From sequence record PQ287642.1: 64,000 bases of DNA; one strand, written 5' to 3'. The notes beneath the pieces are model-generated. The model made no database searches and was not told the origin of the DNA. It saw only the letters and a list, made by a program, of their open reading frames with translations. Below, one piece after another: positions 10,396-23,031 of the stretch. The translations under genes and the position numbers were made by a program. Within the stretch, counting starts at the first letter, position 1, and each line of letters begins with the position of its first letter.

Positions 10396-10481
10396 GCCCG
10401 GTTGGTGAAATTGGTAGTACACAAGAGACTTAAAATCTCTCGGCGAAAGCCGTGTCGGTTCGAGTCCGACACCGGGTACCA
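10396..10481 (+). tRNA. trnL: tRNA-Leu(UAA)
   Basis: Cloverleaf, AGAGA-CTTAAAA-TCTCT, long variable arm, encoded CCA. Confidence 0.95.
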
Positions 10482-10487
10482 AATTTA

Positions 10488-10563
10488 CGGAGTGTAGCGC
10501 AGTTGGTAGCGCGCCTGCTTTGGGAGCAGGATGTCGGGAGTTCGAGTCTCTCCACTCCGACCA
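10488..10563 (+). tRNA. trnP: tRNA-Pro(UGG)
   Basis: CCTGC-TTTGGGA-GCAGG, TTCGA loop, CCA. Confidence 0.96.
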
Positions 10564-10621
10564 TTTAAATATAGAGCCCCTCTGTCATAGAGGGGTTTTA
10601 TATTGTATCGAGATAATAGAC

Positions 10622-10843
10622 ATGAATATCGCGACAATGTTTGTTTTAGCGATTCACGTGGGGTTGTTTGGAATTACATCCACAGAAGAATCGACTATCC
10701 AGTTTGAAAATAAAGCACAGTGTATTTCGCGTCTAGATATTTTAGAAAACAAGTACCGTGGATACGAGATACTACGAACGGAGAATACGTTGAAAGTTAC
10801 TAATCCTGACGAGTATTCTATTTTTATTTTCAAATGTCTTTAA
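10622..10843 (+). CDS. Small exported hypothetical protein
   Basis: Hydrophobic N-terminus; start moved to 10622 to avoid overlap with tRNA-Pro. Confidence 0.6.
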   Translation: MNIATMFVLAIHVGLFGITSTEESTIQFENKAQCISRLDILENKYRGYEILRTENTLKVTNPDEYSIFIFKCL

Positions 10844-11139
10844 GAGAAATTATGGAACATCAAGAACAAAAAGCGCTACTAAAAGAACCATTGCAGAAAC
10901 TCTACAATCTTACGTTTAGTCCCCGCTTACGTAATGGAGCGAAAGCTCCCGATTGGATCCGCCTAACTGATGAAGTAACCCTATTCCCAAACGGATTAGA
11001 TATTACAATCAACGCTATTACACGTTGTATCAAATGGGAACTTATCGAAGAGAGTATAAGTAACATTACTTATGTTGAAGCCATGTTCTTCAATAAAGGT
11101 CTTAAAGCAGTTGAAACCTATCTCAAACATACGGAGTAA
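10834..11139 (+). CDS. Hypothetical protein
   Basis: Coupled ORF in a compact operon. Confidence 0.65.
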   Translation: MSLREIMEHQEQKALLKEPLQKLYNLTFSPRLRNGAKAPDWIRLTDEVTLFPNGLDITINAITRCIKWELIEESISNITYVEAMFFNKGLKAVETYLKHTE

Positions 11140-11141
11140 AT

Positions 11142-11489
11142 ATGAATCATCTAACCCCAACGCAGAACGCTGTATATTTCACATTTGTTAGTCCTGAGTT
11201 TATGAAACTAACTCTTGTTGAATCTTTTGTAGCTATCCACAAGAAACATCCAGAAGTAAAGCACTGTGTTAAGAAAAAGATTAGTGATAATGAAACTCAG
11301 TTTATCTTTATCTTCAAAGATGGGACTGATAATTTAATCGTCACGCGTAAGACTGAACCTTGTCCTGAACTGGATAGTCAAGTAGGCGATAGAATTAAGT
11401 TGTCTGGTGAAGAACTTAAAAATATTCTCACTAAACATGGTCGCCCTAGTGACAGTAACTATTTTAAGCATTGGACAGACCGTTCATGA
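11142..11489 (+). CDS. Hypothetical protein
   Basis: GGAG SD, operon-like packing. Confidence 0.7.
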   Translation: MNHLTPTQNAVYFTFVSPEFMKLTLVESFVAIHKKHPEVKHCVKKKISDNETQFIFIFKDGTDNLIVTRKTEPCPELDSQVGDRIKLSGEELKNILTKHGRPSDSNYFKHWTDRS

Positions 11490-11532
11490 TATTATAAATC
11501 CCTATGTATACTAATATGTAGGTAATGAATTA

Positions 11533-11609
11533 GGGTCTATAGCTCAGTTGGTTAGAGCAGGCGACTCATAATCGCTTGGTCGTAGGTTCGAGTCCTACTG
11601 GACCCACCA
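11533..11609 (+). tRNA. tRNA with CAU anticodon, probably Ile2 (lysidine type)
   Basis: GGCGA-CTCATAA-TCGCT-type arm; GGGTCTA acceptor resembles bacterial Ile2 rather than initiator Met. Confidence 0.88.
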
Positions 11610-11732
11610 AATTAATAAAGCATAATGCCTCCCTTAAATAGGGGAGGCATTATTCTGTCTATGATAATAAAATAAATATCTGAACCGCAAAGGTTATCCT
11701 ATGATCTAAATGGTTTACTTGAGAGCATACTA

Positions 11733-13580
11733 ATGTTTGAATTATTGTTATCAGCTGCTGGGCAAGCTAAGCCAGTGGAAATGATACCGTATAACCAACC
11801 AACATTGTTTGGACAACTGGATGTTGGATTGGTTGGATCGGTACCCTATTTCAGAAATGGTTTATTAAATATTAATAGTGGTGCTCCATCAAGAAGTACA
11901 ACTGATAATAAAATCAGAATTTTTGATAGCACTGGTACTCAAATCAGTAAAACAGCTGTCCAAAATAGTTATTCACTTTGTCATACTGCGGGTGTATTTG
12001 TTCCAACATCTGATAGACTTTACATGTTCGGTGGGCGTCGTGGGGCTTCTTGGACACAAAACGTCATCACGATGATCAATCCAACTGTACCTAATGATAA
12101 TCTTATTAGTAATCAGTTGATGAATACATCCACTTATAACAGTATCGGCGATTGGGATGGCGGTGAATTTATTTGGGTACTGGAACATGCAACAGATCTT
12201 TTGATTCGCTATAGACTATCGAATAACGTTCGAGAAGTAATGAGTGCCCGGTGCCCTGTTATTCTATCTGGAGCGTATGCATTCTGCCATAAAGGGAATT
12301 TCTATGTGATGGGTGGATGGAAGAACATCTCTGGCAGTTGGGTTGTTAACCAAGATGTTTATAAATACACCGTTGCTATTAATACATGGACATTGTACCA
12401 TTCATACTCCACAGACTACCACGGTGGTCATCAAGGTGGTAAGTACTGGAACGGGACTTTTAACTACACTATCGTTAAAGATGGTAAGATTCATTGTGTT
12501 CGTTATTATATCGCCGAAAAACAATTTGTTGTTACTGAGACGAATATTGGTGAGGTCCATGGGACATCAGTCGCATTAAATCCATCGAATGGCGATCTGT
12601 ATCTGATCGGTGGTTCGGACATTGTTATCGATGACGCCCTTTTTAACACCCCTGAAAGAACGAAAGCAGCTATCTATAAATTCACTATTCCTATCCCTCC
12701 AAGTAAAACTGAATGGGAAGTAATGGCAAACGCACCTTATGATAGTCGAGGTTCCACTGCGGTTGTAATAGATGATGAACTGTATATGTTCGGCGGGTAT
12801 ACAAGTACAGGTGCATATAGAGGCGCGTTTAATAAATATAATCCTGAGACTAATACATGGAACGGTCTATTCACTGGATCTGGTTTAAGTCCGAGTGCAC
12901 GTGCTAATATGTGTGCAGCTGCAAATGATACACATATGTACCTATTCAGTGGATCTAACCAATCAGCAGATTTCTGGCGTTATAACGTAGCGACCAATGA
13001 TTGGACGGCTATTACACCCGCTTCTCCGGGTTCATCTAATCCAGTATTTAGAACACAAGCTACGATGGTTCATTATAATGGTAAGCTCTATTTGCTTGGC
13101 GGGAATAATGAATCTGACGCGTTGTTCGTCTACGATATTGCATCTAACATGTGGTCAAAACGAGTTGCGCAAGGTGGTATCCAACGATCTTCGCATAGAG
13201 CGGTTGTTGTCGGCGAGTACATGTATGTCTATGGTGGATTTGTAAATGGTTCGCAATCCGGTCGATTTGATCGAATGAATATGAATACATTTGCATGGGA
13301 GTCTCTACCGACTACCGATGGGCCAGGTGTTAACAGTTACGGTGTAATGCTGACTAACGATGAAGAAATTATATACATTGGCGGTGTTGACGAAGACAAA
13401 CGTAGAAAAGCCAATGCGTATAATATCCAATCGAGAACATGGCGTAAACTACCAGAACTACCAAACGGTGTGAATGATGGCTATGGTGGATTTATTAATG
13501 GCACAGCATATGTTGGCGGTGGTCTAACTGGAGCCAGTAATAATACAATTACAGACAAGTTCTATCGTCTTGGAATTTAA
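11733..13580 (+). CDS. Double Kelch beta-propeller protein, MFELLL N-terminus
   Basis: About 11-12 LYxFGG...Y..W repeats in 615 aa. Confidence 0.88.
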   Translation: MFELLLSAAGQAKPVEMIPYNQPTLFGQLDVGLVGSVPYFRNGLLNINSGAPSRSTTDNKIRIFDSTGTQISKTAVQNSYSLCHTAGVFVPTSDRLYMFGGRRGASWTQNVITMINPTVPNDNLISNQLMNTSTYNSIGDWDGGEFIWVLEHATDLLIRYRLSNNVREVMSARCPVILSGAYAFCHKGNFYVMGGWKNISGSWVVNQDVYKYTVAINTWTLYHSYSTDYHGGHQGGKYWNGTFNYTIVKDGKIHCVRYYIAEKQFVVTETNIGEVHGTSVALNPSNGDLYLIGGSDIVIDDALFNTPERTKAAIYKFTIPIPPSKTEWEVMANAPYDSRGSTAVVIDDELYMFGGYTSTGAYRGAFNKYNPETNTWNGLFTGSGLSPSARANMCAAANDTHMYLFSGSNQSADFWRYNVATNDWTAITPASPGSSNPVFRTQATMVHYNGKLYLLGGNNESDALFVYDIASNMWSKRVAQGGIQRSSHRAVVVGEYMYVYGGFVNGSQSGRFDRMNMNTFAWESLPTTDGPGVNSYGVMLTNDEEIIYIGGVDEDKRRKANAYNIQSRTWRKLPELPNGVNDGYGGFINGTAYVGGGLTGASNNTITDKFYRLGI

Positions 13581-13584
13581 TAAA

Positions 13585-13605
13585 TACTGGTATGGTAATA
13601 CTATG
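13585..13605 (+). promoter_or_regulatory. TAC-N14-TATG motif before tRNA-Tyr
   Basis: AAATACTGG-11 nt-TATGTAAG. Confidence 0.65.
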
Positions 13606-13624
13606 TAAGACTATACCAGATTTC

Positions 13625-13713
13625 GGAGAGATAGGAAAATTGGTAACCCCAGCTGACTGTAAATCAGCCGTCCGTATCGGGCATTACTGGTTCGAGTCCA
13701 GTCCTCTCCACCA
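13625..13713 (+). tRNA. trnY: tRNA-Tyr(GUA)
   Basis: GCTGA-CTGTAAA-TCAGC, long variable arm, CCA. Confidence 0.93.
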
Positions 13714-13775
13714 ATGCGTCATAGTGCTCTCCCTTCGGGGAGAGCTTTATGTCAACTATTACAAAAGGAAATAAC

Positions 13776-14312
13776 ATGTCAGCATTAAGTTTGATTAAAC
13801 GTTGGTCACCCGCAGTACCTAAAATTCTATTGAGTCCACAGGACACTGTCAATGAGACTAAGATGGTCTTAGATAACGAGGGTGGAGAATATATGAAGTT
13901 TAATGACTTCTTGATCCTCCTTCAAAACGGCGTGTACCTAGAAGCCACCAAAGAGATGCATGAGACTTTGTTAGATGGTAAAGCACAGCAAAGTCTCATT
14001 GCTCGACTTAGTCGCATGGGTTATGAAGACTTTGATCAAGTAATGAAAGTCTTAGAAGAACAGCGTGATTCTGTACTTAAGAAGAAAGAATATGAAATTT
14101 GGCAAGAAGGACATCGCGCTACTGGCGAATCTAGTATAGCCAGCTTTGTAGGTAAAGCTGAAGGTTATTCTTTCTTAGATGCTGTAGACAACTACATGAA
14201 GACAGCTAGTGAGGAAGTTAAGAAATGTTTCCGTGCTGAACTAGACGCAGCTTATATTTGGGGTTGTCGTTTGTTTGACAATGAAGCCGACGCACGTAAA
14301 TCTTTCGGGTGA
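13776..14312 (+). CDS. Hypothetical protein
   Basis: AAGGA SD before ATG 13776. Confidence 0.75.
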   Translation: MSALSLIKRWSPAVPKILLSPQDTVNETKMVLDNEGGEYMKFNDFLILLQNGVYLEATKEMHETLLDGKAQQSLIARLSRMGYEDFDQVMKVLEEQRDSVLKKKEYEIWQEGHRATGESSIASFVGKAEGYSFLDAVDNYMKTASEEVKKCFRAELDAAYIWGCRLFDNEADARKSFG

Positions 14313-14315
14313 CTT

Positions 14316-14486
14316 ATGGTTCCTAATCTTTCTATAAAAGCAATTCATGCTCGTCAAACTCCAGAACAACTTGCTGACAACCGAGAGAAAACTCTTGAGG
14401 CCCTGGCTAAGTTCAACCAGGCTCAACGTAAACTTGAAGAGCATTGCAAACGCAATGGACTTGAAGTACCAATTATGGTTTGTTAA
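14316..14486 (+). CDS. 56-aa microprotein (not in ORF track)
   Basis: MVPNLSIKAIHARQTPEQLADNREK...; packed between neighbouring genes. Confidence 0.65.
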   Translation: MVPNLSIKAIHARQTPEQLADNREKTLEALAKFNQAQRKLEEHCKRNGLEVPIMVC

Positions 14487-14488
14487 TA

Positions 14489-14635
14489 ATGACTGATGAC
14501 AAAAAAGAAAAACAGCATAAAGGGCGACAAGCCCTCAATGTAGTTGGTGAAATCATTGGCGCTGTGTTCGAAGCTATTTGGTGGGTCTTGACCTGCCCGT
14601 TCCGTTTAATCGGTGTACTCTGTACGCTTGATTAA
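14489..14635 (+). CDS. 48-aa membrane microprotein (not in ORF track)
   Basis: Basic N-terminus then hydrophobic IIGAVFEAIWWVLTCPFRLIGVLC. Confidence 0.65.
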   Translation: MTDDKKEKQHKGRQALNVVGEIIGAVFEAIWWVLTCPFRLIGVLCTLD

Positions 14636-14640
14636 AATAA

Positions 14641-14661
14641 TACCTAGTTGATTACAATATG
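14641..14661 (+). promoter_or_regulatory. TAC-N14-TATG promoter-like motif of ncRNA candidate 2
   Basis: TAC 14641-43 and TATG 14658-61. Confidence 0.6.
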
Positions 14662-14932
14662 TAACGAACAAAGTTACTTCATCGAAAGCTACCTGTAGAA
14701 ACATCTCACATTAGGTCCAGCAGACTGTAGTATTTCGATGTGACCATTTATAGCACCCGGAAACCAAAGGCTAATAGTGGCAAGCCGATGATTGAGGGAA
14801 GTCGAATGGGCCGCCCATACCGAAAGGTGTCTCTTCAGTTCCACTAACTGTCACCTCACGATGGACATTACGATCAAAAAGAGACTGGTTTTAATGTCCG
14901 ATATACGACTCTCCGATAAGGAGAGTTTTATG
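14661..14932 (+). ncRNA. Candidate structured ncRNA 2 (about 270 nt)
   Basis: Multiple hairpins including a GAAA tetraloop; promoter motif upstream; terminator about 14907-14932. Confidence 0.6.
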
Positions 14933-14985
14933 TCGTTTTATACTGGGCTATATAACAGTATGTCAAAGGATGTAAAGAGGTAATC

Positions 14986-15276
14986 ATGACAGCTTTCATG
15001 CCATGTCATACTGAGGCTGATATAGACCTAGCTTCAAGAAATAAAATGTTGTCAGAGCTACTTATAGAAGAATTCCCAAATACAGAAGGGATGTCAACTA
15101 AAGCAGCAGAAGACTATCTACGGTCTAAGGTCATAGATAAATTCAATATTAACCATCCCGAATATCAAGCACATGTAAGTTACGATTGTACTACACGTGG
15201 AGATTTCATTACGGCTTGGGTAACTCGAAGACTTGCCCTTGTAAAACTTGCTATAACTACAGAGGATCAATCATGA
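14986..15276 (+). CDS. Hypothetical protein
   Basis: GAGG SD; operon packing. Confidence 0.7.
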   Translation: MTAFMPCHTEADIDLASRNKMLSELLIEEFPNTEGMSTKAAEDYLRSKVIDKFNINHPEYQAHVSYDCTTRGDFITAWVTRRLALVKLAITTEDQS

Positions 15277-15488
15277 ACGAAAACGCACTGTACCAAGACG
15301 ATGGACTTGGCGCACTCATTACGGAAATTTTTAGTCGGGATCTGAATAAGAAATTTCAAGAATGGTATCGTCCGATTATGGATGACCCCAGCATTGAAAA
15401 GGTACCCGTTTGTAGAAACGGTCAGGTTGTAAAAGAACCCGTTAATTTTGTAGCCCTTTTGAAAGAATGGTTAGCTAATCAAGATTAA
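15273..15488 (+). CDS. Hypothetical protein (MNENALY...)
   Basis: ATGA overlap with the upstream stop and GAGG SD; shorter than the ORF-track call. Confidence 0.6.
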   Translation: MNENALYQDDGLGALITEIFSRDLNKKFQEWYRPIMDDPSIEKVPVCRNGQVVKEPVNFVALLKEWLANQD

Positions 15489-15548
15489 AAACATAAAGCC
15501 TCCCTTCGGGGAGGTTATATGTTATGATTTTGACGAAAGGTAATCGTT

Positions 15549-16487
15549 ATGTTTGAAGTTTTGTTAGGAATTGGGGAATATAAAAGTAAGCAAGGTTGGG
15601 TTCAGCTACAGGGACCCGATGTCGGAAGAAATCAGTCAACATCTGTTGTTGTAGGAGACAAACTTTATATCTTCGGTGGACGCCGTGCCACCACTAATGC
15701 GTTTAACACGGTATCCGTCTATGACTTCATAGCAGACGAATGGAAAGAACTACCAGCTGGAGCGAACGTTAACCTACGTGCTGCTGGTGGTTTAGTTGGT
15801 AATAAATTTTACGTATTCGGTGGATATACAGGTTCCGCTGATACGAATACAATGGTAGAGTTTACTATTGATGGCGAAACTATCACCCCTGTAACTCGAT
15901 CCAATGGTGGATTGGCTGTTCGTAATAGCCACTGCATGTCGGCTATTGATAATAAAGTGTATCTGTTTGGTGGGAACGGTGCACAGGGTATTATGTATGA
16001 ATTTAAAAGCTACAATACCGATAACTTTACAGTAGCTAATCTAACACCACCATACCAAATCCGTTATGCGTCTCTAACTAGTCATGATCGCCGTCTTTAC
16101 ACGCTCGGTGGATATGAAACCGCTAACACATCAGTTGCCTCATTTAGAAGTTATAATGTTGACAACAACACATGGACTGCCCACAAGAATGGTCTTGTAA
16201 ATAGAAATAGACATTCTGCCGTAGCTCTTAATAATAAGATCTATGTATTCGGTGGTCAATCTGGTACGAGCTCTACTCCAAACACTATTAACAACGATCA
16301 TATTTTCAGTGTCTATGATATTGAAACCGATACATGGTCAAACATAATACTTCCTCCGGGTAAGATGCCCCCTACTAGATTCTATGCTAATATGGAAGTC
16401 TACGACGGTAAGATTTATTTATCTGGTGGTTACACGAATGGTGTGTACCACAATGATCTATGGGTATACGATCCAGAGAATCCATGA
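15549..16487 (+). CDS. Kelch beta-propeller protein, MFEVLL N-terminus
   Basis: Six LY[IV]FGG...YD..W repeats. Confidence 0.9.
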   Translation: MFEVLLGIGEYKSKQGWVQLQGPDVGRNQSTSVVVGDKLYIFGGRRATTNAFNTVSVYDFIADEWKELPAGANVNLRAAGGLVGNKFYVFGGYTGSADTNTMVEFTIDGETITPVTRSNGGLAVRNSHCMSAIDNKVYLFGGNGAQGIMYEFKSYNTDNFTVANLTPPYQIRYASLTSHDRRLYTLGGYETANTSVASFRSYNVDNNTWTAHKNGLVNRNRHSAVALNNKIYVFGGQSGTSSTPNTINNDHIFSVYDIETDTWSNIILPPGKMPPTRFYANMEVYDGKIYLSGGYTNGVYHNDLWVYDPENP

Positions 16488-16494
16488 AAACAAA

Positions 16495-16515
16495 TACTGG
16501 CGTAGTGATTATATG
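16495..16515 (+). promoter_or_regulatory. TAC-N14-TATG motif before tRNA-Leu(UAG)
   Basis: AAATACTGG-11 nt-TATGTAAG, same ends as 13585. Confidence 0.65.
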
Positions 16516-16544
16516 TAAGGATTAGCGTTAAGCATATTCTACAT

Positions 16545-16630
16545 GGGAACATAGGCGAATTGGTATAGCCAGCTGGTTTAGGTCCAGCCGTCGTAAGACA
16601 CTGTGGGTTCGAGTCCCTCTGTTCCTACCA
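16545..16630 (+). tRNA. trnL: tRNA-Leu(UAG)
   Basis: GCTGG-TTTAGGT-CCAGC, variable arm, CCA. Confidence 0.92.
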
Positions 16631-16795
16631 TTTCAATAGAGCCTGCCGAAAGGCGGGCTTTATGTTGCAAATTGTATGATTTAGTCTTTTGGTAAGTACC
16701 TTTAATGGGGGAGGCCTTAGACGGTAAGGGAGTAGGAACGTGAAGTTCTATACAGTCACCCCTCTGTAAACAGTCACTTTTCAATGGATAAAATT

Positions 16796-18364
16796 ATGTT
16801 TGAATCGTTGTTGTCAGTACTCATTAAGGTAACAGAAAATAAATTACCCGGTCCCTCTACCTTTGAATACGGTGATTCGACACTTGGTCTGTATGGTGAG
16901 TTAGCAAGTGATAAGTTTATAACTTACCCTCAGTTAAGAACACTTGTTGAACTCGATTCCATTGGTAGCATAAATACCGATGCCGGCTGGATTAAGGTAT
17001 CTAGGAATAATGTTGTCATGTATTATTCAAAGACAGCTATTCTCCGATCCATTAGTCCAAACCAACTTGATACCGCTGGTTTAATAGATGGTAGTAAAGT
17101 TATTGTAATTGACGGAAATATGTTTAAAGTCCGTCTTATGAATGCAGGTGAAAATCCTTATTCTGATATTACTACCCAAGGTAATGAAGGTTCCGAGTTA
17201 TGGGATATTTTTGGTAACGTTACAACCAAAGGAAGCTGGGCGAAATATACAGATTCTCAACTTATAGGTGCTGAAGGCGGTAGTTATAGCTGGGCGGCTA
17301 ATAGAAATACAAATGGTAATTATCTACAGTTCTCGCCTTCGTCTACTCATCCCCAGGCAAAGAATGGAGTTTATGTTTACGACGGACACCCACCGACGGA
17401 AGCTACTAATTATAGAGGATGGCGTCCAGTACTAGAATATATTCCACCGAAGGAACTTAAAGGTTTATCGTCTGTACTATCGACAGTAAATCCACCACCA
17501 CAACGTGGGATGCCAGTGCTTGCATATGACTCGGATAACAATGATATCTATATGGCTTGTGGATATACAACTGGACCAACTGCTTTCATGTCCGACCTAC
17601 ATCGATTAGACATGGATACAAAAACATGGACTAAGTTACCATCGGTTGTGCCATTCCAAGGTGAAACCACTACCACGAATATGGTTTACAGTAACGGTAA
17701 ATTAATTCTTCATGGTAACCCATTGTCAACTGGGCCAACTATTTATATTTACACCATAGCTACTGATACCTGGGAAACTAAAAAGCTCGCGGCTATTCCA
17801 GGTTTGGTTGAAGCTTACTACATCGAACGTACAGCCAGTATAGTTAAAGATGACATACTCTATATTGTCGGTGGTTTCTCTGGTCGAAACGATAAGATCC
17901 ATAAGAGTATTATAACGGTTGATCTAACCTCCTACTCAATCGATCTTATTGAAAATATTCTACCATTTGAGGCTTGGCATCACGATCTTGGATTTAATGA
18001 TAATAACGAATTAGTTATTGTTGCATCTCAAGGTAGATTATCTATTGGTGGAACAAATATCACACCAACGGACTATATAAAAATTAGTCCCGATTTTAGT
18101 GCCGCTGAGACCATCCCTTTAAATGCACCGGCTAATAAGTATTCGACGTATAGGTCTATTGTTTTCGGCAACAATATCTATATTACGAATAATACTACAA
18201 CACAGTTAGCATTGGTACAACTTAATAAAGAACCAGAGCTAATCGGAGATCCTTTCCCTACAATTAGGTCGTATGAAGAAATGGTGATTACATCAGCTGG
18301 TGTATATAGATTCAGCGGTGATGTTTCTAAAACAGCACCTGTAGTCGAATACGAAATTAAATAA
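16796..18364 (+). CDS. Virion structural protein: phiKZ-type N-domain (...GWRPVLE) plus Kelch-like propeller, MFESLL start
   Basis: GDSTLGLYGE and GWRPVLE motifs of phiKZ-like structural paralogs; C-terminal propeller repeats. Confidence 0.75.
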   Translation: MFESLLSVLIKVTENKLPGPSTFEYGDSTLGLYGELASDKFITYPQLRTLVELDSIGSINTDAGWIKVSRNNVVMYYSKTAILRSISPNQLDTAGLIDGSKVIVIDGNMFKVRLMNAGENPYSDITTQGNEGSELWDIFGNVTTKGSWAKYTDSQLIGAEGGSYSWAANRNTNGNYLQFSPSSTHPQAKNGVYVYDGHPPTEATNYRGWRPVLEYIPPKELKGLSSVLSTVNPPPQRGMPVLAYDSDNNDIYMACGYTTGPTAFMSDLHRLDMDTKTWTKLPSVVPFQGETTTTNMVYSNGKLILHGNPLSTGPTIYIYTIATDTWETKKLAAIPGLVEAYYIERTASIVKDDILYIVGGFSGRNDKIHKSIITVDLTSYSIDLIENILPFEAWHHDLGFNDNNELVIVASQGRLSIGGTNITPTDYIKISPDFSAAETIPLNAPANKYSTYRSIVFGNNIYITNNTTTQLALVQLNKEPELIGDPFPTIRSYEEMVITSAGVYRFSGDVSKTAPVVEYEIK

Positions 18365-18385
18365 TACTTCGTGTCTAATAGTATA
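18365..18385 (+). promoter_or_regulatory. TAC-N14-TATA motif before tRNA-Thr/Asp
   Basis: TAATACTTC-11 nt-TATACGAG. Confidence 0.6.
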
Positions 18386-18403
18386 CGAGAGTATTCAATT
18401 TTC

Positions 18404-18481
<78 letters not shown>

Positions 18482-18501
18482 GTTTAAGTAGTTTAAAATT
18501 A

Positions 18502-18578
18502 GGCTCCATAGTTCAGTTGGTTAGAATGCTTGCCTGTCACGCAAGAGGTCGCCGGTTCAAGTCCGGCTGGAGTCGCCA
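18502..18578 (+). tRNA. trnD: tRNA-Asp(GUC)
   Basis: CTTGC-CTGTCAC-GCAAG, CCA. Confidence 0.95.
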
Positions 18579-21393: not shown

Positions 21394-22071
21394 TTACCTA
21401 TTTACGATATTGACAGGACGGGGCTTAGAGTTAACCGATATCTTTTTCACTGCCCGACTTGCTACCCAATGACGTGCCCGATCACTAAGATCATTGTCAC
21501 GTGTGAGTATATTCGATTCAGCATTCCAGTGATCGAACCGACGACCAAGTACAGGGTAGTGTGCTTGAGCTAGAACCATGCATTCCAGTGGGCTTAGTTT
21601 GTTCTCAGCCGAGGTGAATACATTATTCAATAGTTCAACTGCTACAGCGCAACCAAAAATGATTGGTTTACGTGCAGGCGTGGAATAATAATTGCTCCTA
21701 AACATGTCATGGGTTGATTCGAACACATGAAGAACATTATCTTCATCGATGAGGATGTATTCGGCATTAGGCGTAAGCAGGTGTTGGAAATTCTTTGCGG
21801 TCTCTGCTAGACTATGTACATCATCTCCTGTCTCCAAGAAATTCAGCCAGCAATGACGATGTTCCGTATCTCCAACCATTGTAAATGCTTTTATAGCTCG
21901 ACCCCAGACTTTAGCTTCCCATTTGTTCTCAGAAGCAAGATAGATCTTGGACTTGTCCAGTTCCACGTAGTATGGTTGTGGTGTACCATCCTCTCCAGTG
22001 ATATCGCTCTGGGTGATCGTAGTAACTCGATCAACCAAAAGATCCTTACCATCCCATATGACAATAGTCAT
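21394..22071 (-). CDS. HslV/proteasome-beta-like Ntn hydrolase
   Basis: Thr after the initiator Met (MTIVIWDGKDLLVDR), SKIY, TMVGD, IIFGC motifs. Confidence 0.7.
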   Translation of the reverse strand: MTIVIWDGKDLLVDRVTTITQSDITGEDGTPQPYYVELDKSKIYLASENKWEAKVWGRAIKAFTMVGDTEHRHCWLNFLETGDDVHSLAETAKNFQHLLTPNAEYILIDEDNVLHVFESTHDMFRSNYYSTPARKPIIFGCAVAVELLNNVFTSAENKLSPLECMVLAQAHYPVLGRRFDHWNAESNILTRDNDLSDRARHWVASRAVKKISVNSKPRPVNIVNR

Positions 22072-22104
22072 TCTTTATATTCTCCTGTTTACAAGCTGAG
22101 ACGG

Positions 22105-22474
22105 AATAAAACCCGCTCCTCAACGGAGCGGGCTATTCGTTAGATTACCTTACCAGAAAGCTGGCCAGCTAAGGCACCGATTACGGGTCGGCACCCATCT
22201 GGTTAGGTAACGCCACTCGGGGATACCCCTCTCAACTGGAGGTAGTAACCGTCGTAACTTCAGATATAAAGACGGCCAAGTCAATATACCTGCTTCGGCT
22301 TGATCCTTTGGCATGGATCGCTGTTAGTCTCTCCGATCTTATGCGGAGAGAGCCCACTTACACCGAAAGCTAGTGGGAATAAGGTGAGGTCACTGCGGCA
22401 CCCTAATATGGCGACGGGGAGCCTTAGGGGAGATGATCCGGGTGACCTCTGTTCTGTTGGGACATTAGTCCTCG
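22105..22474 (-). ncRNA. Candidate structured ncRNA 3 (about 370 nt)
   Basis: At least 8 helices, GC-rich, no credible long ORF; TAC-N14-TATACGAG motif upstream on minus; U-tailed terminator about 22105-22135. Confidence 0.68.
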
Positions 22475-22495
22475 TATATCATTACAACTCAAGTA
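22475..22495 (-). promoter_or_regulatory. TAC-N14-TATA promoter-like motif of ncRNA candidate 3
   Basis: Minus strand GAATACTTG-AGTTGTAATGA-TATACGAG; last 8 nt identical to the tRNA-Thr motif. Confidence 0.62.
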
Positions 22496-22500
22496 TTCTT

Positions 22501-23031
22501 TTACGAGAGTTTAACTTCTACGTCAACTGACTCAAGACCAGTCCCGTTTCTTTTATTAGATCCACGTGCTAGCAGGTAACGAGACCAGGTCTCCGCTTGT
22601 ACTCGGTCAAACTTAAAGTAGATATGCTGCATGATCATCTTACTCAGGTCAGCGATTTCTTTCGACACCATATCAAAGAACAGGTCTTTGTCCATTACGT
22701 CAGCATCATAACGAGCCAGCTCAACGTTGCAATACTGTGCTTTCACTTTATCATAGAACTCAACAGCAGGTTCTTGATGAAAGTAATGGACTTTGTTATC
22801 TTTGATTTCGATACCATGGAGAGTGATCTCGATGTGGTTGCTATGATAGAAATGTTCACGCATAGCTTTATTAAACTCTTCCACCATCTTATCCAGATGG
22901 ATACCTCTAATAACCTCTTTGGCAGTGAATAGATAATTACCATTTGGATCAACGTATTGTTCGCGCGCCCAAAGACAGCACAGACCAATAGGAATGATCT
23001 CAGTGGGGATACGTAGATCACTGAGCTGCAT
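22501..23031 (-). CDS. Hypothetical protein
   Basis: AGGAG SD before MQLSD. Confidence 0.7.
   Translation of the reverse strand: MQLSDLRIPTEIIPIGLCCLWAREQYVDPNGNYLFTAKEVIRGIHLDKMVEEFNKAMREHFYHSNHIEITLHGIEIKDNKVHYFHQEPAVEFYDKVKAQYCNVELARYDADVMDKDLFFDMVSKEIADLSKMIMQHIYFKFDRVQAETWSRYLLARGSNKRNGTGLESVDVEVKLS

Follow-up and report, generated by a model that had tools for sequence, protein, structure and literature searches.

We found that the stretch between two minus-strand genes of Pseudomonas phage HHBS36_1, a nucleus-forming giant phage of the PA1C/PS119XW-like chimalliviruses, is a non-coding RNA gene of roughly 370 nt. It belongs to an RNA family that matches no Rfam 15 family and that is carried once per locus, downstream of the phiKZ gp287 homologue, in 23 distinct phage or metagenome loci, including phiKZ, PhiPA3, Psa21, 201phi2-1 and Phabio. 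All members share a core of ~88 nt, to which this phage and some of its relatives add a 3′ extension of ~280 nt. The analysis was carried out on a window of 64,000 nt from record PQ287642.1, and coordinates refer to this window unless they are preceded by an L number, which labels one of the loci compared here. The features are collected in the table below, in which the ends of the RNA are predicted from sequence.

Features of the RNA gene and of its surroundings
Feature	Position	Strand	Description
Region between flanking genes	22072-22500		429 nt
Upstream gene CDS0036	22501-23031	minus
Middle promoter, phiKZ-type	22474-22497	minus	A-rich run, TACT, about 10 nt, TAAT, 2 nt, TATAC (AAAAGAATACT-N10-TAAT-GA-TATAC); predicted start of transcription near 22473
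Whole long-form RNA	22105-22473	minus	About 369 nt, from the predicted start of transcription to the terminator U-tract
H0	22460-22471	minus	5′ hairpin, GGAC-UAAU-GUCC
13-codon ORF	22424-22465	minus	MSQQNRGHPDHLP; GAGG four bases upstream
Universal core domain	22373-22458	minus	H1, then H1b, H2a and H2b
H1	22442-49 / 22386-93	minus	8 bp
H1b		minus	3 bp
H2a		minus	6 bp, CCCTAA / TTAGGG
H2b		minus	3 bp
Core 5′ internal loop	22429-38	minus	GAUCAUCUCC, invariant
Core hairpin loop	22413-20	minus	UCCCCGUC, 8 nt
Core tail	22378-85	minus	ACCUUAUU
H3	22353-22377	minus	Hairpin, stem 22353-58 / 22372-77; loop with CUUUCGG at 22363-69
H4	22328-22351	minus	Hairpin, stem 22328-35 / 22344-51 (UCUCUCCG ... 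CGGAGAGA)
H5	22302-22319	minus	Hairpin, GATCC / GGATC; loop GCCAA at 22308-12, complementary to the H6 loop
Candidate partner of the H3 loop	22292-22298	minus	CCGAAGC, between H5 and H6
H6	22261-22292	minus	Hairpin; apical loop UUGGCC at 22274-79
H7 domain	22212-22258	minus	Invariant GAAGUUAC (22254-61) leading into outer stem GUUAC/GUGGC
Non-conserved helix	22249-53 / 22271-75
H8 three-way junction	22144-22211	minus	Outer stem 22145-56 / 22199-210 (one mismatch), second tier, hairpin a and palindrome hairpin
Palindrome	22159-22170	minus	AGCUGGCCAGCU, 12 nt; 8-nt centre CUGGCCAG
Intrinsic terminator	22105-22134	minus	GC-rich stem of about 10 bp followed by UUUUAUU
Annotated HHBS361_CDS0035	22232-22357		Small CDS annotated over the RNA
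Downstream gene CDS0034	21394-22071	minus	phiKZ gp289 / PhiPA3 gp355 family; ribosome-binding site within about 25 nt of the terminator, no room for a promoter of its own; not part of the RNA
Other promoter-like sites	13584, 16494, 18364	plus	Before tRNA-Tyr, tRNA-Leu(tag) and tRNA-Thr/Asp; the fourth site is at 22496 (minus)
tRNA cluster	10396-18578		3.5 kb from the RNA

We first examined whether the region is structured. GC content rises to 0.50-0.53, against about 0.40-0.45 around it. The minus strand folds to -147.5 kcal/mol (z = -4.59), with 0 of 100 shuffles as good, while the plus strand gives z = -3.88, again with no shuffle doing as well. The original prediction had described, from the sequence alone, a GC-rich multi-helix RNA of about 370 nt with a set of named helices, and this observation is confirmed. 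All of the named helices are present (H0, H1, H2a, H3, H4, H5, the H8 outer stem and the helix 22249-53 / 22271-75). All but two are kept in distant homologues through compensatory changes. H0 is found only in the PhiPA3/Pawinskivirus group, where GGAC/GUCC becomes GGAA/UUCC in PhiPA3, and short-form homologues lack it. The helix 22249-53 / 22271-75 can form in this phage but is not kept in PhiPA3 or the 201phi2-1 group, and competes with the conserved H6 and H7.

We next sought to determine the strand and the boundaries of the transcription unit. The pattern ATACT-N6-12-TRAT-N1-3-TATRY, which was derived after seeing the sites that it describes, matches four places in the 64 kb, against 0.18 expected. 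Three of them lie directly before tRNA genes and the fourth immediately upstream of the RNA. The motif lies at the right distance from the first helix and fits the published phiKZ middle-promoter motif, that is, TACT centred 22 nt upstream of the start of transcription and preceded by an A-rich repeat (PMC8244752). In 201phi2-1, a tRNA is also driven by a middle promoter (PMC11512511). The promoter is kept in all homologues, and a terminator accompanies every copy, with a stem that changes by compensation in PhiPA3 and in every other homologue. The terminator loop (22117-22121) is inverted between this phage and the otherwise near-identical PS119XW (L009; UCAAC against GUUGA), which looks like an inversion of the hairpin loop. 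In PhiPA3, H1 keeps pairing through U-G pairs that would be A-C mismatches on the plus strand, and the PhiPA3 sequence folds with z = -3.19 on minus and -1.76 on plus. Therefore, the minus-strand assignment, the promoter and the terminator of the original prediction are right, while its remark that some wobble pairs favour the plus strand is not borne out.

To evaluate whether the RNA belongs to a known class, the window and seven homologous loci were searched against the 4227 models of Rfam 15. Only tRNAs passed the gathering scores, seven of them in the window. At E <= 10 the only hits were Thr/Phe-leader and small-RNA look-alikes driven by the terminator, at 11-22 bits against cut-offs of 37-99, the leader look-alikes reaching 18-22 bits against a gathering score of 55. 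ARAGORN found seven tRNAs and no tmRNA in the window, and no Rfam tmRNA model hit. No RNase P model reached E <= 10 on either strand, although short minus-strand strings (AGGGUGCC, ACAGAAC) recall RNase P motifs, and the size of about 370 nt and the nearby tRNA genes would also suit a known large RNA class. There was no hit to the intron, ROOL or GOLLD models. A group I intron is also opposed by the promoter and terminator that the element has of its own and by its flanks, which are separate genes, the upstream one (CDS0036) having no homologue beside the PhiPA3 copy. At that position PhiPA3 carries gp354 (L002:3158-3562), a 134-residue protein whose annotation as 'putative phage integrase' has no Pfam or PHROGs support, and Pawinskiviruses carry an unrelated gene. 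It is thus very unlikely that the region is a diverged member of a known large RNA class (RNase P RNA, tmRNA, group I intron, ROOL/GOLLD, riboswitch or T-box) or that it is protein-coding. One record annotates a 41-codon ORF inside the region, and other records annotate different small ORFs or none. The small CDSs annotated over the RNA (HHBS361_CDS0035, three in HPP-Temi, two in Viktualia; window 22232-22357, L003:1565-2408, L005:1586-2036) are not conserved and are probably spurious. In addition, the annotated start of 201phi2-1 gp425 (L016:7505) lies inside the terminator region of the RNA, and an in-frame ATG 23 codons downstream (L016:7574), preceded by AAGGAGA, is the likelier start.

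We then searched for homologues. By BLAST against phages, the 429-nt region was identical to HHBS36_1 (PQ287642.1) at the same coordinates and 91-100% identical to BRkr, phiHQ, PS119XW, PA1C, phiLBG22 and HPP-Temi, and one third of it matched PhiPA3 at 78%. These are nucleus-forming jumbo phages (Pawinskivirus, Miltoncavirus). Only Pawinskivirus and part of PhiPA3 were recovered in this way. Exact-pattern scans of IMG/VR found only PhiPA3 plus three chance hits in GC-rich coding DNA. Profile methods were needed to go further. An nhmmer profile of the close relatives found matches in loci fetched through the conserved gp287 homologue, namely phiKZ, Psa21, 201phi2-1 and Viktualia. A locus search with the single gp287 homologue protein found nothing, whereas searching with an alignment worked, and after iteration RVTF4, D6, Phabio and many IMG/VR contigs followed, and then metagenome contigs. 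A covariance model of the core (R1) found exactly one hit per locus, at 55-86 bits, and a single hit in the window (84.4 bits, E = 9e-21). The 23 loci comprise 21 from the first model search plus two new metagenome loci. No further copy of the core or of the extension exists in the window or in the flanks of short-form phages, and L045, a more distant phage whose gp287 homologue is 32% identical, has no core even with filters off. A second conserved non-coding stretch with its own terminator lies one gene after the gp287 homologue in D6 (L006:1710-1934) and Psa21 (L014:7086-7322), and the PhiPA3 gap at the equivalent place (L002:4061-4302) holds a tRNA-like T-arm remnant that Rfam does not call as a tRNA.

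The core behaves as a conserved RNA structure. On the MAFFT alignment 86% of cells pair. On the model-based alignment 93% of cells pair, 17 of 20 pairs show changes on both sides, and the covariation score is 0.767, against 0.243 for shuffles (0 of 500 reach the observed value) and at most 0.18 for slid partners. The unpaired residues are invariant: AUCUC in the 5′ internal loop, CCCGUC in the hairpin loop, G-N-GC opposite, and C-R-CCUA after H1. The same data bear on the 13-codon ORF, through which the original prediction had proposed, as its second option, a leader-peptide-controlled RNA. The ORF and its GAGG exist in HHBS36_1 and in the nearly identical Pawinskivirus genomes, but PhiPA3 has AUU in place of AUG and an in-frame UAG, and no short-form or 201phi2-1-type homologue has an equivalent. 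Moreover, the GAGG would sit at the very 5′ end of the transcript, and the ORF runs through H1/H2, where changes are compensatory at the RNA level. This option is therefore not supported, being refuted by the comparison, and we consider it a remote one. Overall, the interpretation given in the original prediction is partly supported, since a new large ncRNA class holds while control by a leader peptide does not. It had also missed that the unit is modular and that the model phage phiKZ carries the core alone.

Two forms of the RNA were found. The short form consists of the core, about 13 nt and the terminator, roughly 115-150 nt in all, and occurs in phiKZ, Psa21, RVTF4, D6, Phabio and several uncultivated phages. 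The long form, in which the core is followed by about 280 nt, occurs in the Pawinskivirus group, PhiPA3, 201phi2-1, Viktualia, L032, L033, L036 and L044, and the 201phi2-1 group also has about 100 nt inserted before the core. A profile of the extension hit only long-form loci, directly after the core. L022, an IMG/VR phage, carries after the core an extension of about 270 nt that this profile does not recognise (L022:2404-2790), which may be a third form. Because Phabio is short but groups with the 201phi2-1 lineage, and because the extension is homologous in two separate lineages, the extension was probably ancestral and lost several times, although this point is an inference.

To examine the extension, we folded the segments between invariant anchors, since MAFFT alignments across subgroups mis-registered several helices, and counted pairs only within the well-aligned 201phi2-1-like subgroup. 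The statistics rest on 6-10 sequences from two lineages. Every long form gave the same hairpins with unrelated stem sequences (H4, H5, H6, H7 and the H8 junction), a hairpin at the H4 position being present in each of the nine long forms examined. In the six 201phi2-1-like sequences 97% of cells pair, against 29-40% for slid partners, and 11 of 34 pairs change on both sides. In the H5 stem, 6 of 7 pairs change on both sides within this subgroup. Compensatory changes also occur in the outer stem and the second tier of H8. The H3 stem changes from CCCAC/GUGGG to CCCUC/GAGGG in PhiPA3, and the H7 outer stem reads GUUAC/GUGGC, GUUAC/GUAGC or GUUAU/AUAGC in different phages. The H5 loop (R-CCA) and the H6 loop (UGG-Y) are complementary over 4-5 or more bp in all nine long forms examined, with GCCA/UGGC switching to ACCA/UGGU, and none of 2000 loop shuffles reaches the observed mean, consistent with a loop-loop kissing contact. 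CUUUCGG in the H3 loop, invariant in all long forms, is complementary in all sequences to the invariant CCGAAG between H5 and H6. With H3 formed, this pairing would be a pseudoknot. The palindrome centre CUGGCCAG is invariant in all 10 long forms, while its flanks change keeping the symmetry (AG..CU, CA..UG, G..C). Because these last two elements never vary, covariation can support neither the pairing nor dimerisation, which remain plausible proposals, and a 4-nt loop closed by U-A is small for a kissing complex. A further pseudoknot, between the H2 loop CGUC(G) and (C)GACG after GAAGUUAC, was rejected because GACG is replaced in 201phi2-1, although Viktualia has UGACG.

Neighbouring genes gave no indication of function, as Pfam and PHROGs returned none for the neighbouring proteins. 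The family of CDS0034, which includes phiKZ gp289 (L013:7755-8486) and PhiPA3 gp355, starts M-T (M-S in PhiPA3) followed by I/V-V-x-D-G. Its AlphaFold model (pLDDT 77, pTM 0.76) matches 20S proteasome beta subunits in the PDB (Foldseek E = 6e-5, TM about 0.5), whereas Pfam and a PDB sequence search find nothing. This predicted fold has no evident link to RNA, and the family may represent a proteasome/HslV-like Ntn-hydrolase of phiKZ-like phages.

What the sequence comparison establishes is a minus-strand non-coding RNA gene with a phiKZ-type middle promoter, which in phiKZ is read by the phage's own non-virion RNA polymerase, about 369 nt of structured RNA and an intrinsic terminator, as the long form of a family present once per genome in phiKZ-like Pseudomonas chimalliviruses, whose universal core is a bent hairpin that displays the invariant single-stranded motifs AUCUC(C), CCCGUC, G-N-GC and CCUA, and whose 3′ extension (H3-H8) is optional and varies by lineage. 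Its function, its binding to any partner and its self-association are inferred. With moderate confidence, we propose that the RNA acts as a free, stable, trans-acting molecule made in the middle phase together with the phage tRNAs. The core would be the working part, and its invariant C/U-rich loops would bind one conserved, still hypothetical partner, either a protein or a G-rich RNA segment such as a Shine-Dalgarno-like GGAG/GACGGG site. The extension would be a compact scaffold held together by the CUUUCGG:CCGAAG pairing and the H5-H6 kissing loops, and the palindrome could let two molecules pair, as the palindromic loop of OLE RNA does. In favour of this view, the core is far more constant than any neighbouring protein, the promoter type is shared with the tRNA genes, the invariant residues are single-stranded and C/U-rich, which, as with C-rich loops of small RNAs, suits binding of a G-rich RNA site or a protein, and the gene immediately downstream differs between lineages: it is a gp289-like protein here and in phiKZ, a small membrane protein in the Psa21 group and other small proteins in the 201phi2-1 group. 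Also, the roughly 280 nt that separate the core from the terminator in long forms would, in this view, prevent the two from forming a riboswitch-style expression platform. On the other hand, no expression data for this locus were found, the supplementary tables of the phiKZ and 201phi2-1 transcriptome studies lying outside that search.

The main rival, which we regard as the less likely one, is that the RNA is a cis-acting leader. In this case the core, made first, would act on the transcribing phage polymerase, as the put RNA of HK022 does, or would bind a factor that decides whether the terminator is obeyed, setting the expression of the promoter-less genes downstream (the gp289 family and its neighbours), and the free RNA would be a by-product of premature termination. 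Indeed, all 23 loci share the layout of promoter, structured RNA, terminator, ribosome-binding site within 10-40 nt and genes on the same strand with no promoter of their own, which is that of a leader or attenuator. In addition, ONT-cappable-seq found 17 ncRNA candidates in phiKZ that arise by premature termination in a 5′-UTR (PMC10914365) and more in 201phi2-1 (PMC11512511), and in short forms the core begins within about 10 nt of the predicted start of transcription. In these forms the terminator follows the core by 12-15 nt, and inspection by eye, without a formal search for alternative folds, showed no conserved antiterminator pairing between the two. Against this rival, the terminator stems differ in every phage, long forms place about 280 nt of independently folded RNA in between, the gene immediately downstream is not conserved, and transcripts from the upstream genes would also run through the element, because the promoter overlaps the end of CDS0036.

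We also considered that the RNA might be a decoy or mimic of the 3′ minor domain of 16S rRNA, soaking up a factor that acts on that part of the ribosome, or Shine-Dalgarno sequences themselves. The hairpin loop CCCGUC(A/G)C copies 16S 1402-1409 in the decoding centre, GGAUCAUCUCC resembles the anti-Shine-Dalgarno end GGAUCACCUCC, and (G)UGAAGUUAC resembles 1489-1501. CCCGUCAC matches E. coli 16S at 1402 in 201phi2-1, Viktualia, L036 and Phabio, GUGAAGU matches at 1489 and GGAUCAC at 1529 in 201phi2-1, and the motifs concerned are the invariant unpaired ones. However, each RNA shares 10-40 words of 7-11 nt with 16S by chance, scattered over the whole rRNA, so that the matches, although striking to the eye, carry no statistical weight. 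Besides, the anti-SD-like motif is inexact (AUCUCC against ACCUCC) and the helices around the motifs do not resemble h44 or h45, making this reading very doubtful. A sponge for RsmA (GGA) or Hfq (ARN) was likewise rejected, because inspection by eye showed that the motifs are not conserved across the family. A bolder possibility, which we consider unlikely but not excluded, is that the long form is a new class of self-pairing 'ornate' phage RNA, in which two molecules would join through the CUGGCCAG palindrome, and that the core would be an essential RNA module of all phiKZ-like nucleus-forming phages, acting for example on the ribosome or the translation start region, or on the phage's own polymerase, during the middle phase.

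phiKZ-like phages are the model for the phage 'nucleus' and transcribe their genomes with their own polymerases, yet their RNA biology is almost uncharted, a 2026 review citing only two ncRNA candidates found by gradient sequencing. The RNA is conserved more strongly than the proteins around it and is present in every relative examined, the more distant L045 apart, including phiKZ, PhiPA3 and 201phi2-1, all of which can be studied at the bench. It has a clear two-part build, with a core that is always present and an ornate extension that comes and goes. It gives a defined target for knock-down or deletion, a natural short-versus-long comparison, a candidate for the kind of RNA-only assembly recently seen in OLE, ROOL and GOLLD, and a correction to probably spurious small-ORF annotations in several deposited genomes.

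Finally, we compared the RNA with the closest known systems, of none of which it is a member. The terminator-bounded, 5′-UTR-derived ncRNA candidates of phiKZ and 201phi2-1 found by ONT-cappable-seq (Putzeys et al. 2024, PMC10914365; PMC11512511), for example sRNA005 / sRNA-gp182, share the phage group and the layout of a phage promoter, a short structured RNA, an intrinsic terminator and then a gene. The phiKZ short form (record ~263180-263290, upstream of gp289) may be one of the 17 phiKZ candidates, which are not listed in the text. The published conserved example, however, lies upstream of the tail gene gp182, a different locus, and no mention of the gp288/gp289 locus was found in the searchable literature. 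The 201phi2-1 screen kept only transcripts under 250 nt, which would have excluded the ~470-nt long form, and the covariation, the core-plus-extension modularity and the proposed tertiary contacts appear in none of the texts that could be read. ROOL and GOLLD are large, ornate, pseudoknotted RNAs of unknown function, encoded by phages and prophages and often near tRNA islands (PMC12286853). The present RNA is also phage-encoded, lies near a tRNA cluster and shares the tRNA promoter type, but it does not match their Rfam models, is much smaller (370-470 nt, or about 120 nt in short forms, against about 580 to over 800 nt) and has Pseudomonas chimalliviruses as hosts. In OLE RNA, a palindromic GGCC tetranucleotide in loop L9.3 forms a symmetric kissing contact between two chains (PMC12286853). 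The long form carries CUGGCCAG with GGCC at the hairpin tip, in a loop of only 4-6 nt, but the two RNAs are not homologous and the invariant palindrome offers no covariation evidence for intermolecular pairing. As for the put RNA of HK022, a polymerase-binding antiterminator, it is likewise a structured RNA of about 70-90 nt made just after a phage promoter and upstream of terminators, acting in cis; the comparison is one of layout, in which no further similarity was seen, and put is two simple stem-loops that act on the host polymerase, while the polymerase here is the non-virion enzyme of the phage.
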